Assembly (NCBI GenBank): GCA_038496445.1
Contig: JALMLS010000073.1
Location: 1 to 44,316 of the forward strand
Source of the DNA: Trichosphaerium sp. ATCC 40318
Taxonomy: Eukaryota; Protista; Tubulinea
DNA length: 44,316 nt
Direction: 5' to 3'
Below the pieces are notes generated by a model. The model was not told the DNA's origin, searched no databases, and worked only from the letters and a program-made list of their open reading frames with translations. Both the position numbers and the translations under genes were made by a program. Numbering within the stretch: position 1 is the first letter of the stretch; each line of letters starts with the position of its first letter. This document shows positions 27,991 to 30,286 of the stretch, piece after piece.

Positions 27991-30286
27991 TTAGTTAGCA
28001 CAGCACGTCACATACTGTATTTCCTCTTCTTCATCATCAGGTGCGTTCTTTACATTCAACCTAGAAGGTTGTTTTGGTTGTGGATGCCAAAAAAATCTTT
28101 TGGCTGCTGGTTGTGTTTCTGCAATATCAGGAATTGGAGGAAGTTCTTCTTCTTCATCAGAAAAAACTAGTGCCTCAGATGGTATATCATATAACCCTGA
28201 ATCAACACCGTTCTGTTCTGGGTTAACTTTATCAAGACCTAAGCCATCATACAAAGCCCAGATATCTGAAGGAAAACAAGAAAAGTTAGCCCTGTAATTG
28301 TCGTTATTTTGTACCTTGTAAGAGTATATCAAAAGCGATCTCTGCCTTGTCAAGGGATAAGGAGCTAGTCTCTACAAAGTTAATACGCCACTCCTTGGCA
28401 AATTGTTGACCTTCCCCTGAAGGCACTTGACGGTCACTCCCAAGATCATTCTTGTAAATATGTCAGCGTATTCAAACAACGTGCTTACAACAAACAAAAA
28501 AAAAAAAAAAAGAAAGAAGAGGTTCGCACTTTGTTTCCAATTAGTAGAATTTGAATTACTGGGTTACCAGAAAATGTCTTAACAGCTGTTATCCACCTAT
28601 ATTAAAAGAAAGTTAATCAAGTGGTGTAATACGATTTTGTTGACCAAAAAAAGGATAAAAACGACAAAAACGACAAAAACGACAAAAACTTACTTTCTTG
28701 CGTTTTCAAAGCTTTCTCGCCTTGTAATATCATACATTACTATGGCGCCATGAGCGCCTCTATAGAATTGTCTGCATACAGACTGAAACCGCTCTTGTCC
28801 ACCTAAAAGACAGTTAATATTTTACTTGGATAACAAACAGAAAAAAATGCGAAAACTGTCAAGACAAACTTCTTGTCTTATAGCTGTACAACGCATTAAG
28901 TACTTACTTGTATCAGTCATCTTTACAGTAACAAATTTCCCATAAACAAAGTACCTAGGCAACACAAAAAATCAACGACAAAATGTTTCAAAAAAAGAAA
29001 AAAGTTAATAAATCACGTACTTCTTACAAGCGTGATCTTGTCCTATAGTAGCAGGAAGCTTAGGTAACTCTGCAGCATTACGATCATTACTTAGTACTTG
29101 AAATAAAGTCGATTTTCCAACAGCATAATCGCCCACAAATAGTACTACAAGAGAATGTAAATCAAATCAGAAATCACAACAAAGAAAAAAAGATTAAGAA
29201 ACCACTGAACAATCTCGTCCGTTGATTCCTCAATAAAACAACAAGTTTCATCGCAATAGAAATTACCTTGGAATAAAAGTGATGAACGGACTGTCATACG
29301 AACAGCTGTTCCATTTCTGAACATTTCTTTTTTTGGCGCTTTTGGTTTTTTTCTTCTCCTGCGCTTCTTGGTCTGTAGACCTTTCTTTGTACTTACTTTT
29401 CTAGTTATTATAGCAAGTTTACGTGATGGTTTCTTCATAAACAAAGCCTCTACCTGACCGCTAGCTGCTTTTTTAACGACAACTCGCACTTTCAAGTCTC
29501 CGTATTCTAATGCCTTTTTTCCGGGCTTTGACTGTAAATGAAGGTAACGAACACCTTGCTCTGCTCTTATATTCTCTAAAGGAATATGGAACTCTCCCTG
29601 AAAGAGCGTTTAAAAAAGAAAGTATCGAATACTGCTTGTTTTAGCATAAAACAGCGTTATCGGCGTACCATAAAGTCATTACGGGACGCTTTATCGTAAT
29701 CGTACACTACAAAAGATAATCGACCAGAGAAATCAGTTATATGGCTTTAATTTTGATTAATATGTATCATATACGTATAAATAACGTACAAACGAAACGT
29801 TTCTGACTCCCATATTGGATTTAACGATTTTAGGATTGTTTTTGTTCTAAATTTTGCAGCACCAACAGAAACTTTTACAAAAGGATCACTCAGACCTAAA
29901 ATAAAGGTTAAGAATCATAATTCTGAGCCAACTTCTTTTTATAGCCTGAAAAAACGAAAACGAAAACGAAAACAACAAAAAAAAAGACGAAACGACATTT
30001 GAGTTCCTAATTTTGTGATCAAAAAAAAAAAAAACACCACCATACCGTTTAAATCTTTTGGCATTAAATTAATGCCTTTAAGAATATCTACAACTAATAT
30101 ATTTGTTCCATTTGTTCGTGGACGAGCACCAACAGTTTTACGTCTTCTAGACTTCCTTAGCTTCACATCATCTGCGCCAATGCTCAGGCTACGTGATTGG
30201 AAATCTCTTTCGCGGGGATGTGTAGTCTCTAGAATAGCTTCACTTGTCATGTTCATGGCTATCTGCGTAGACGCTGAATTTCGCAT
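27991..30286 (-). CDS. C2-domain - Rab-like small GTPase fusion protein with C-terminal CCxx motif
   Basis: C2 domain: [13 protein letters not shown]|[27 protein letters not shown]|GEF. Polybasic linker. GTPase motifs: [42 protein letters not shown]|ND, ETSS. Ends VTCCAN*. Confidence 0.85.

Follow-up and report, generated by a model that had tools for sequence, protein, structure and literature searches.

Rab GTPases are nearly always bare switches that recruit separate effectors. The question raised by one locus of Trichosphaerium sp. ATCC 40318 is whether a Rab can also be made in a single chain with a C2 domain of the Ca2+-binding type. The locus is found on the minus strand of contig JALMLS010000073.1, positions 1-44,316 of which form the stretch analysed here (the window, 44,316 nucleotides (nt)). 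The gene model was obtained by joining the open segments of the three minus frames at GT-AG sites and translating the result. It has ten exons from 30286 to 27991, all introns are GT-AG with consistent phases, and the product has 503 amino acids (aa), arranged as a basic N-terminus, a C2 domain, a polybasic linker of 60 aa, a Rab-like G domain, an acidic tail and the terminal residues CCAN. An in-frame TAA is present upstream of the ATG in the spliced 5' untranslated region (5'UTR). The limits 27991-30286 proposed for this gene in a first-pass annotation of the window were exact, as the ATG is at 30286 and the stop codon at 27993-27991.

We consider that a real C2-Rab fusion protein is quite probably made from this gene. 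The best explanation of the locus, which we favour as a somewhat probable one, is a single-chain 503-aa "large Rab" with a Ca2+-gated second membrane contact.

The C2 domain

Pfam was run on single exon pieces of the window gene. Homologue tests were done on two sequences of a related transcript, L001 (see below), namely its C2 open reading frame (ORF) and the protein P0001. Exon 2 alone matched the C2 family (PF00168) with an E-value of 1e-7 and 32.5 bits, the curated cut-off being 22, and exon 3 gave 0.066. The C2 ORF of L001 scored 85.7 bits, with an E-value of 3e-24, and its match spans positions 2-96 of the 104 in the profile. All five canonical Ca2+-ligand Asp residues that had been claimed for this domain were found on direct reading (D78, D84, D131, D133 and D139). 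Their spacing is that of synaptotagmin C2A, and the same positions of L001 align with Asp of the C2A domains of synaptotagmin-7 and -3. We take them to be the equivalents of D172, D178, D230, D232 and D238 of synaptotagmin-1 C2A. The beta3-beta4 stretch of the domain is rich in Lys and leads into NPIW.

The relatives of solved structure are, nearest first, myoferlin, dysferlin, synaptotagmin-7, -3 and -1, and PKC beta; the myoferlin match (2.4e-31) is a whole-chain score summed over several C2 domains, and its best single stretch has an independent E-value of 1.5e-8. Synaptotagmin C2A, ferlin and PKC-type C2 domains have all five loop Asp aligned with those of the window domain. However, the proteins of this group have no GTPase domain, whereas the window protein has one and carries a single C2 domain, without a transmembrane anchor and without a tandem C2 partner. 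The window C2 domain is predicted to bind Ca2+ and acidic lipids.

The Rab-like G domain

Pfam Ras matched exon 7 (1.5e-10), exon 9 (1.5e-5) and exon 5 (0.1), and the Rab ORF of the homologue (2.9e-43). The G domain had been described as complete from G1 to G5 with the variants TDTSGQ and ETSS, and direct reading agreed with this: the motifs are GDYAVGKS (G1), the switch I Thr in TIGQD (G2), DTSGQE (G3), NKND (G4) and ETSS (G5). The best 60 matches of solved structure listed for the homologue Rab were all Rab or Ypt proteins, with Ypt31/Rab11 at about 1e-33 and Rab8, Rab2 and Rab1 at about 1e-30. A word search of a large protein collection with P0001 returned ordinary Rabs at about 40% identity (Rab19, Rab37, Rab8 and Rab10-like), the named matches being Rab or Ras-family proteins, and the Atlas neighbours of the homologue are clusters of ordinary Rabs. 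By these similarities the G domain is to be classed as a divergent Rab without a clear subfamily.

The Trp of IWDTAGQE, which belongs to the Rab hydrophobic triad (Phe-Trp-Tyr) for effector binding, is present in 43 of the 43 other aligned Rabs and is replaced by Thr in the window protein and by Val in L001 and P0001. In G5 an Ala is changed to Ser, so that ETSS replaces ETSA in both the window protein and L001 (L001 977-1470). Among the RabF motifs, which together with the triad are the Rab hallmarks of Pereira-Leal and Seabra and of Merithew et al., RabF4 (FYRGA) and RabF5 (MYDIT) are kept, and RabF1 (IGQDH), RabF2 (KMTDTSGQE) and RabF3 (RFQSVC) are altered. The loss of the Trp means that the usual effector recruitment may be altered, and together with ETSS it suggests a changed effector face. 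An AlphaFold2 model of P0001, made from an alignment with 43 Rabs, gave a predicted local distance difference test (pLDDT) of 85-98 in the G domain.

The basic linker and the acidic tail

The two remaining parts of the protein have opposite compositions. The linker has 23 K/R and 2 D/E in 62 aa, a net charge of about +21, and includes a conserved KKPSRKL motif and a conserved segment ahead of G1 (EMF..TAV.MTVRSSL). The tail has 20 D/E and 6 K/R in 91 aa, a net charge of about -14, and shares the motifs LQDIW.LY, PSEAL.FSD, FWHP.P and EEE.QYV.CCAN with L001. The K/R-rich linker, the acidic tail and the CCAN end had all been reported from the first pass and are present as described. For the double-Cys end CCAN we predict double geranylgeranylation.

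In the model of P0001 both linker and tail have a pLDDT below 50, and the linker is predicted to be disordered and not a coiled coil. Their opposite net charges are kept in the homologue, which is 55% identical; an electrostatic intramolecular latch between them is a possible idea, and the short conserved motifs of the tail may be binding sites.

RNA evidence

A search of sequencing runs gave two runs, X1 and X2, both of which were mapped on window positions 27400-30900. The contigs of X2 come from a near-identical strain and are derived from cDNA, since they show spliced joints and carry a SMART template-switch oligo at one 5' end. They match introns 1-7 and 9 to the base, that is 8 of the 9 coding introns; intron 8 falls at a skipped poly-A repeat and is absent from the list of joints. 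A 941-nt contig extends from the 3' untranslated region (3'UTR) through all the Rab exons, across the joint 29144/29267 and 85 nt into the linker exon, and further contigs begin in the 5'UTR, cover the C2 exons and reach exon 4. The splice expected between 29150 and 29270, for which a check by cDNA had been advised, is thus seen in cDNA-like contigs. Tiling of the gene is complete from 5'UTR to 3'UTR save for 27 nt at 29352-29378, and the depth is similar along the gene (6.7-10.1). Given these joints, the nearly complete tiling and the even depth, C2 and Rab are very probably on one transcript. The contig ends on the two sides of the 27-nt gap have neither a template-switch oligo nor a poly(A) end. 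Four differences from the window are listed for X2 in exon 9, and none of them changes an amino acid in the Rab frame.

Run X1 gave a single exact 172-nt piece of exon 10 along with low-complexity matches and was uninformative. Two microsatellite-like repeats, (AAAACG)n in intron 1 (29945-29985) and (CGACAAAAA)n in intron 7 (28647-28690), draw many low-identity X1 contigs.

A homologue with the same order of domains

A phmmer search with exon 4 (110 aa) returned one match only among 1.84 billion representative proteins, P0001 (1.8e-5), which is encoded on L001. This is a 1784-nt poly(A) transcript of JGI sample 3300016894, and its C2 ORF is also recorded under the source "mmetsp". On this one RNA a C2 ORF (250-753; 3e-24) and a Rab ORF (689-1747) overlap in different frames. 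The window model is 55% identical to the C2 ORF over aa 42-169 and 55.5% identical to the Rab ORF over aa 167-503. Their point of contact is a run of eight A (L001 724-731), and taking out one A gives a continuous ORF colinear with the window gene. A programmed -1 frameshift at this run was considered and discarded, as the Rab frame is +1. The two homologues share all domains and G motifs, the five Asp, the motifs of the tail and the CCAN end.

Strand beta8 of the C2 domain, YGQLKVKIKL in L001, is encoded beyond the frame break and shows its conservation in the Rab frame; a C2 ORF that ends at L001 753 would lack it. The linker alignment that follows is nearly free of gaps, with KKPSRKL in the window and KRPTRKL in L001 both 13 aa after beta8, and the nucleotide differences in this segment are conservative or synonymous in the fusion frame. 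When the nine pairs of linker frames were compared, fusion against fusion scored 60 and the other eight 41 or less, and only 3 of 2000 residue shuffles reached 60. By these comparisons, protein-level conservation of the linker is confined to the fusion frame.

The family as found is tiny, being made up of the gene in the window, its counterpart in the near-identical strain, and L001. When the C2 ORF of L001 was used in a word search, it returned only itself. Metagenome scans with P0001 and with a degenerate pattern gave nothing, which says little as the collection does not contain L001 itself.

Is the fusion protein made?

A number of observations speak against a continuous protein. No single RNA record has an uninterrupted fusion frame, and both RNA sets break it in the linker. 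In L001 it is the extra A of the A8 run that separates the C2 and Rab ORFs, and the 167-aa C2 ORF is marked "complete" in the MMETSP peptide set. In X2 the sole contig over 29401-29453, contig 10, has 53 nt spliced out; this contig alone explains the depth there, and the retained form was unseen at about 7x. Without the 53 nt the reading frame changes, and the ORF, now of 252 aa, consists of C2 and an unrelated tail and ends at a stop 19 codons into exon 5. No X2 contig bridges 29352-29378, and an indel within these 27 nt could change the picture. Moreover, there is a conserved Met 23 residues ahead of the GD in G1, at the place expected for the start of a stand-alone Rab, and normal effector binding by this GTPase is doubtful, its triad Trp being lost.

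From most of these points one might suggest that the locus makes two proteins and no fusion: the main mRNA, lacking the 53 nt, would give the 252-aa C2 protein, and the Rab would start at M233 or M242, both possible starts, by way of an internal transcription start or reinitiation, leaving the open genomic frame as a relic or a minor isoform. The spliced contig with its stop in exon 5, the separate ORFs of L001, the unbridged 27 nt and the conservation of M233 all fit this proposal, and the sequence from M233/M242 onwards resembles a normal Rab N-terminus. Nevertheless we consider it unlikely. It would leave the L001 C2 ORF without beta8, which is conserved in the other frame, and would not account for the linker ahead of M233, whose protein sequence is conserved in no frame but that of the Rab. 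The exon 4 frame is open far beyond chance: over its 110 codons it is open in 0.00015 of shuffles, and over the last 62 codons, counted from the 53-nt segment, in 0.007. Scanning ribosomes translate an ORF behind a long upstream ORF poorly, and here the Rab ORF would follow an upstream ORF of 167-252 codons and several intervening AUGs. The spliced form has its premature stop ahead of five introns, and the end of contig 9 at 29351 is without template-switch oligo, unlike the true 5' end of a neighbouring mRNA at 30367. We favour the fusion frame because beta8 and the linker are conserved in the Rab frame, because exon 4 is open beyond chance, because a Rab ORF so placed would be poorly translated and because of the missing oligo at 29351.

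On the favoured reading, the extra A of L001 is an assembly or slippage artefact, and the form retaining the 53 nt encodes the conserved fusion, with splicing giving an isoform that is alternative or unproductive. The retained segment is in-frame coding sequence and includes KKPSRKL, and the pyrimidine tract at the 3' end of this intron is weaker than in the constitutive introns. A reverse-transcriptase artefact was discarded as the origin of the joint, which has canonical GT..AG ends and only 2 nt of ambiguity. Marquez et al. are said to have described, in 2015, introns inside coding exons under the name of exitrons. Like these, 29401-29453 is protein-coding if left in place, and some RNA has it removed at canonical GT-AG sites, but its length is not a multiple of three, and its removal leads to a truncated protein and not to one with an internal deletion. 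The separation of C2 from Rab by this splicing may be either noise or a switch.

It could also be argued that the locus is decaying, the frame breaks seen in the linker in 2 of 2 RNA data sets being those of a recent accidental fusion on its way to loss. This we regard as highly improbable: two homologues that are only 55% identical have preserved every domain and G motif, the five Asp as well as the tail motifs and CCAN, the strain differences in exon 9 are synonymous, and the genomic ORF is intact. The claim of a single chain made in the first-pass annotation stands as to one gene, one genomic ORF and, in the homologue, one poly(A) RNA; the fusion at the level of protein is left unproven by the frame breaks in the linker.

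How the fusion protein could work

If the single-chain protein is made, its prenylated Rab end would sit on the membrane of the home vesicle or organelle under the control of the GTP/GDP and GDP dissociation inhibitor (GDI) cycle. When Ca2+ rises, the C2 loops would bind acidic lipids, such as phosphatidylserine (PS) and phosphatidylinositol 4,5-bisphosphate (PI(4,5)P2), an interaction to which the polybasic linker and also the Lys-rich beta3-beta4 face of the domain would contribute. The outcome would be a second, Ca2+-gated membrane contact for the Rab. This contact may be made with another membrane and serve for docking, or it may keep the Rab at a Ca2+-active patch of the membrane on which it already sits. 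The Rab itself would in this way contain a C2 module like those of the Rab effectors rabphilin, Slp and Rab11-FIP. A role as a two-membrane tether, in membrane repair or in exocytosis of the contractile vacuole or lysosome, is conceivable as pure conjecture.

The fusion could also act only in cis, with C2 and linker serving for targeting to, or retention on, a PS/PIP2-rich membrane together with the prenyl groups. We see this as possible though doubtful, and as a mechanism variant within the fusion reading whose likelihood overlaps that given to the Ca2+-gated contact. A linker of about +21 stands beside a C2 domain with a Lys-rich beta3-beta4 stretch, and linker and tail, being predicted as disordered, would allow both ends to reach one membrane. 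Polybasic-plus-prenyl targeting is established for Rab35 and K-Ras, and the arrangement resembles the polybasic-plus-lipid anchors of Rab35 and K-Ras4B. On the other hand neither homologue has lost any of the five Ca2+ ligands, which favours a regulated over a constitutive contact; present measurements do not distinguish cis from trans. More far-reaching, and in our opinion rather unlikely, is the proposal that the Ca2+-gated single-chain protein represents a new Ca2+-sensing class of Rab, in which a C2 domain of the synaptotagmin/ferlin type is covalently joined to the prenylated Rab, one chain marks the vesicle and, on a rise of Ca2+, docks it to an acidic membrane, and exitron splicing is the switch that uncouples the sensor.

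Relation to known Rabs and Rab effectors

The comparison drawn earlier, that large Rabs use EF-hands and that C2 domains are normally found in Rab effectors, remains valid. The survey of Klopper et al. 2012 (PMC3425129) counts no more than three Rabs that have an extra domain, Rab44 and Rab45 among them, and a review of large Rabs (PMC8303950) makes no mention of C2. Rab44, Rab45/RASEF and Rab46/CRACR2A-L resemble the window protein in joining, within one chain, a module for Ca2+ sensing at the N-terminus to a prenylated Rab at the C-terminus (PMC8303950; PMC3425129), and shorter isoforms without one of the parts exist for them, as with the spliced form of the window gene. Their sensor, however, is an EF-hand pair with a coiled coil, where the window protein has C2 and a polybasic linker, and they are metazoan members of the Rab8 group, whereas the window Rab is without clear subfamily. 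An EF-hand responds to Ca2+ in solution, while in a C2 domain Ca2+ is linked directly to the binding of membranes. No EF-hand match was given by Pfam on any exon piece (E-values up to 10) or on the homologue (E-values up to 0.01). By analogy, the window protein would work like Rab44, Rab45 and Rab46 but, having no such EF-hand, is not a member of that group.

Separate Rab-effector pairs offer a second comparison. In Rab3/27 with rabphilin or synaptotagmin-like proteins (Slp), and in Rab11 with class I FIPs, a lipid-anchored vesicle Rab acts with a C2 domain whose ligands are PS/PI(4,5)P2 of the target membrane, which is the logic proposed here. These pairs are two polypeptides associating through a Rab-binding domain in a GTP-dependent manner, whereas in the window protein the link would be covalent and there is no Rab-binding domain. 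A further difference is that the window Rab has lost the triad Trp for effector binding.

The first-pass annotation knew of no characterised C2-Rab fusion, and our literature searches found none, the text matches to "C2-Rab" being plasmid names, though predicted and uncharacterised C2-GTPase proteins could exist. Of the 99 Rab matches in the word search with P0001, none carries the C2 family. What would be new here is the C2 domain as the built-in Ca2+ sensor of a Rab, Rabs with a built-in Ca2+ sensor being already known.

Rab44, Rab45 and Rab46 have drawn attention as they tie Ca2+ signals directly to membrane traffic. If the reading presented here is true, a Rab with a built-in C2 domain would be a minimal version of the "Rab plus C2 effector" docking device of regulated exocytosis, and a simple one-protein system for the cooperation of Ca2+, acidic lipids and the Rab cycle. 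Its value is limited by a narrow distribution, as two sequences are known.

Gene structure and other genes of the window

The coordinates of the gene and of its features are collected in Table 1. The window has a G+C content of 37% and short introns of 45-150 nt, which point to a eukaryotic origin.

Table 1. Features of the C2-Rab gene, in window positions
Feature	Position	Strand	Remarks and basis
C2-Rab coding region	27991..30286	-	503 codons and stop; ATG at 30286, stop at 27993-27991
5'UTR intron	30351..30398	-	X2 contig 12 joins 30350 to 30399
Exon 1	30286-30046	-	gene model
Exon 2	29895-29790	-	gene model
Exon 3	29744-29669	-	gene model
Exon 4	29597-29267	-	gene model
Exon 5	29144-29021	-	gene model
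Exon 6	28954-28908	-	gene model
Exon 7	28802-28694	-	gene model
Exon 8	28596-28530	-	gene model
Exon 9	28450-28315	-	gene model
Exon 10	28265-27991	-	gene model
C2 domain	29475..30103	-	aa 62-182, exons 1-4; Pfam and Asp alignment
Ca2+-ligand Asp D78	30055-30053	-	loop 1 (KD..SDP stretch); alignment
Ca2+-ligand Asp D84	29887-29885	-	loop 1 (KD..SDP stretch); alignment
Ca2+-ligand Asp D131	29701-29699	-	loop 3 (YDYD....ND); alignment
Ca2+-ligand Asp D133	29695-29693	-	loop 3 (YDYD....ND); alignment
Ca2+-ligand Asp D139	29677-29675	-	loop 3 (YDYD....ND); alignment
C2 strand beta8 (GDLKVRVVV)	exon 4	-	conserved with L001
Basic linker	29267..29474	-	aa 183-251; composition, conservation with L001
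53-nt intron within exon 4 (exitron)	29401..29453	-	GTAGAG..CTAG; X2 contig 10 joins 29454 to 29400
Polybasic core of linker	29372-29328	-	inside basic linker
In-frame Met M233	29324-29322	-	just before G1; kept in L001 (EMF)
In-frame Met M242	29297-29295	-	just before G1; in-frame codon
Rab-like G domain	28315..29144	-	aa 252-417, exons 5-9; Pfam Ras on exons 5, 7 and 9
G1 (GDYAVGKS)	29133-29110	-	read directly
Acidic tail	27994..28265	-	aa 413-503; composition, conservation with L001
Double-Cys end CCAN	28005-27994	-	ends both homologues

Head to head with the C2-Rab gene there is a plus-strand gene for a P-loop GTPase (window 30351-30700), with a match to MMR_HSR1 (2.8e-5) on 30500-30682 and a YchF/OLA1-like NIGKSTLFN motif. 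It is the mRNA of this neighbour whose cDNA 5' end in X2 carries the SMART oligo at 30367. The 5'UTR of the C2-Rab gene extends past 30399 after its intron, and therefore the 5' ends of the two mRNAs apparently overlap.

Elsewhere in the window, a 440-aa open frame on the plus strand (38188-39507) consists of MORN_2 repeats (3.7e-54). Its best matches are bacterial YwqK-family/MORN_2 proteins at 30-50% identity, with no eukaryotic protein among the best 120 listed. Another plus-strand open frame (9358-10137) contains exo-beta-D-glucosaminidase and mannosidase Ig-fold domains (6.1e-22); it probably belongs to a glycoside hydrolase gene, as the exon for the C-terminus.

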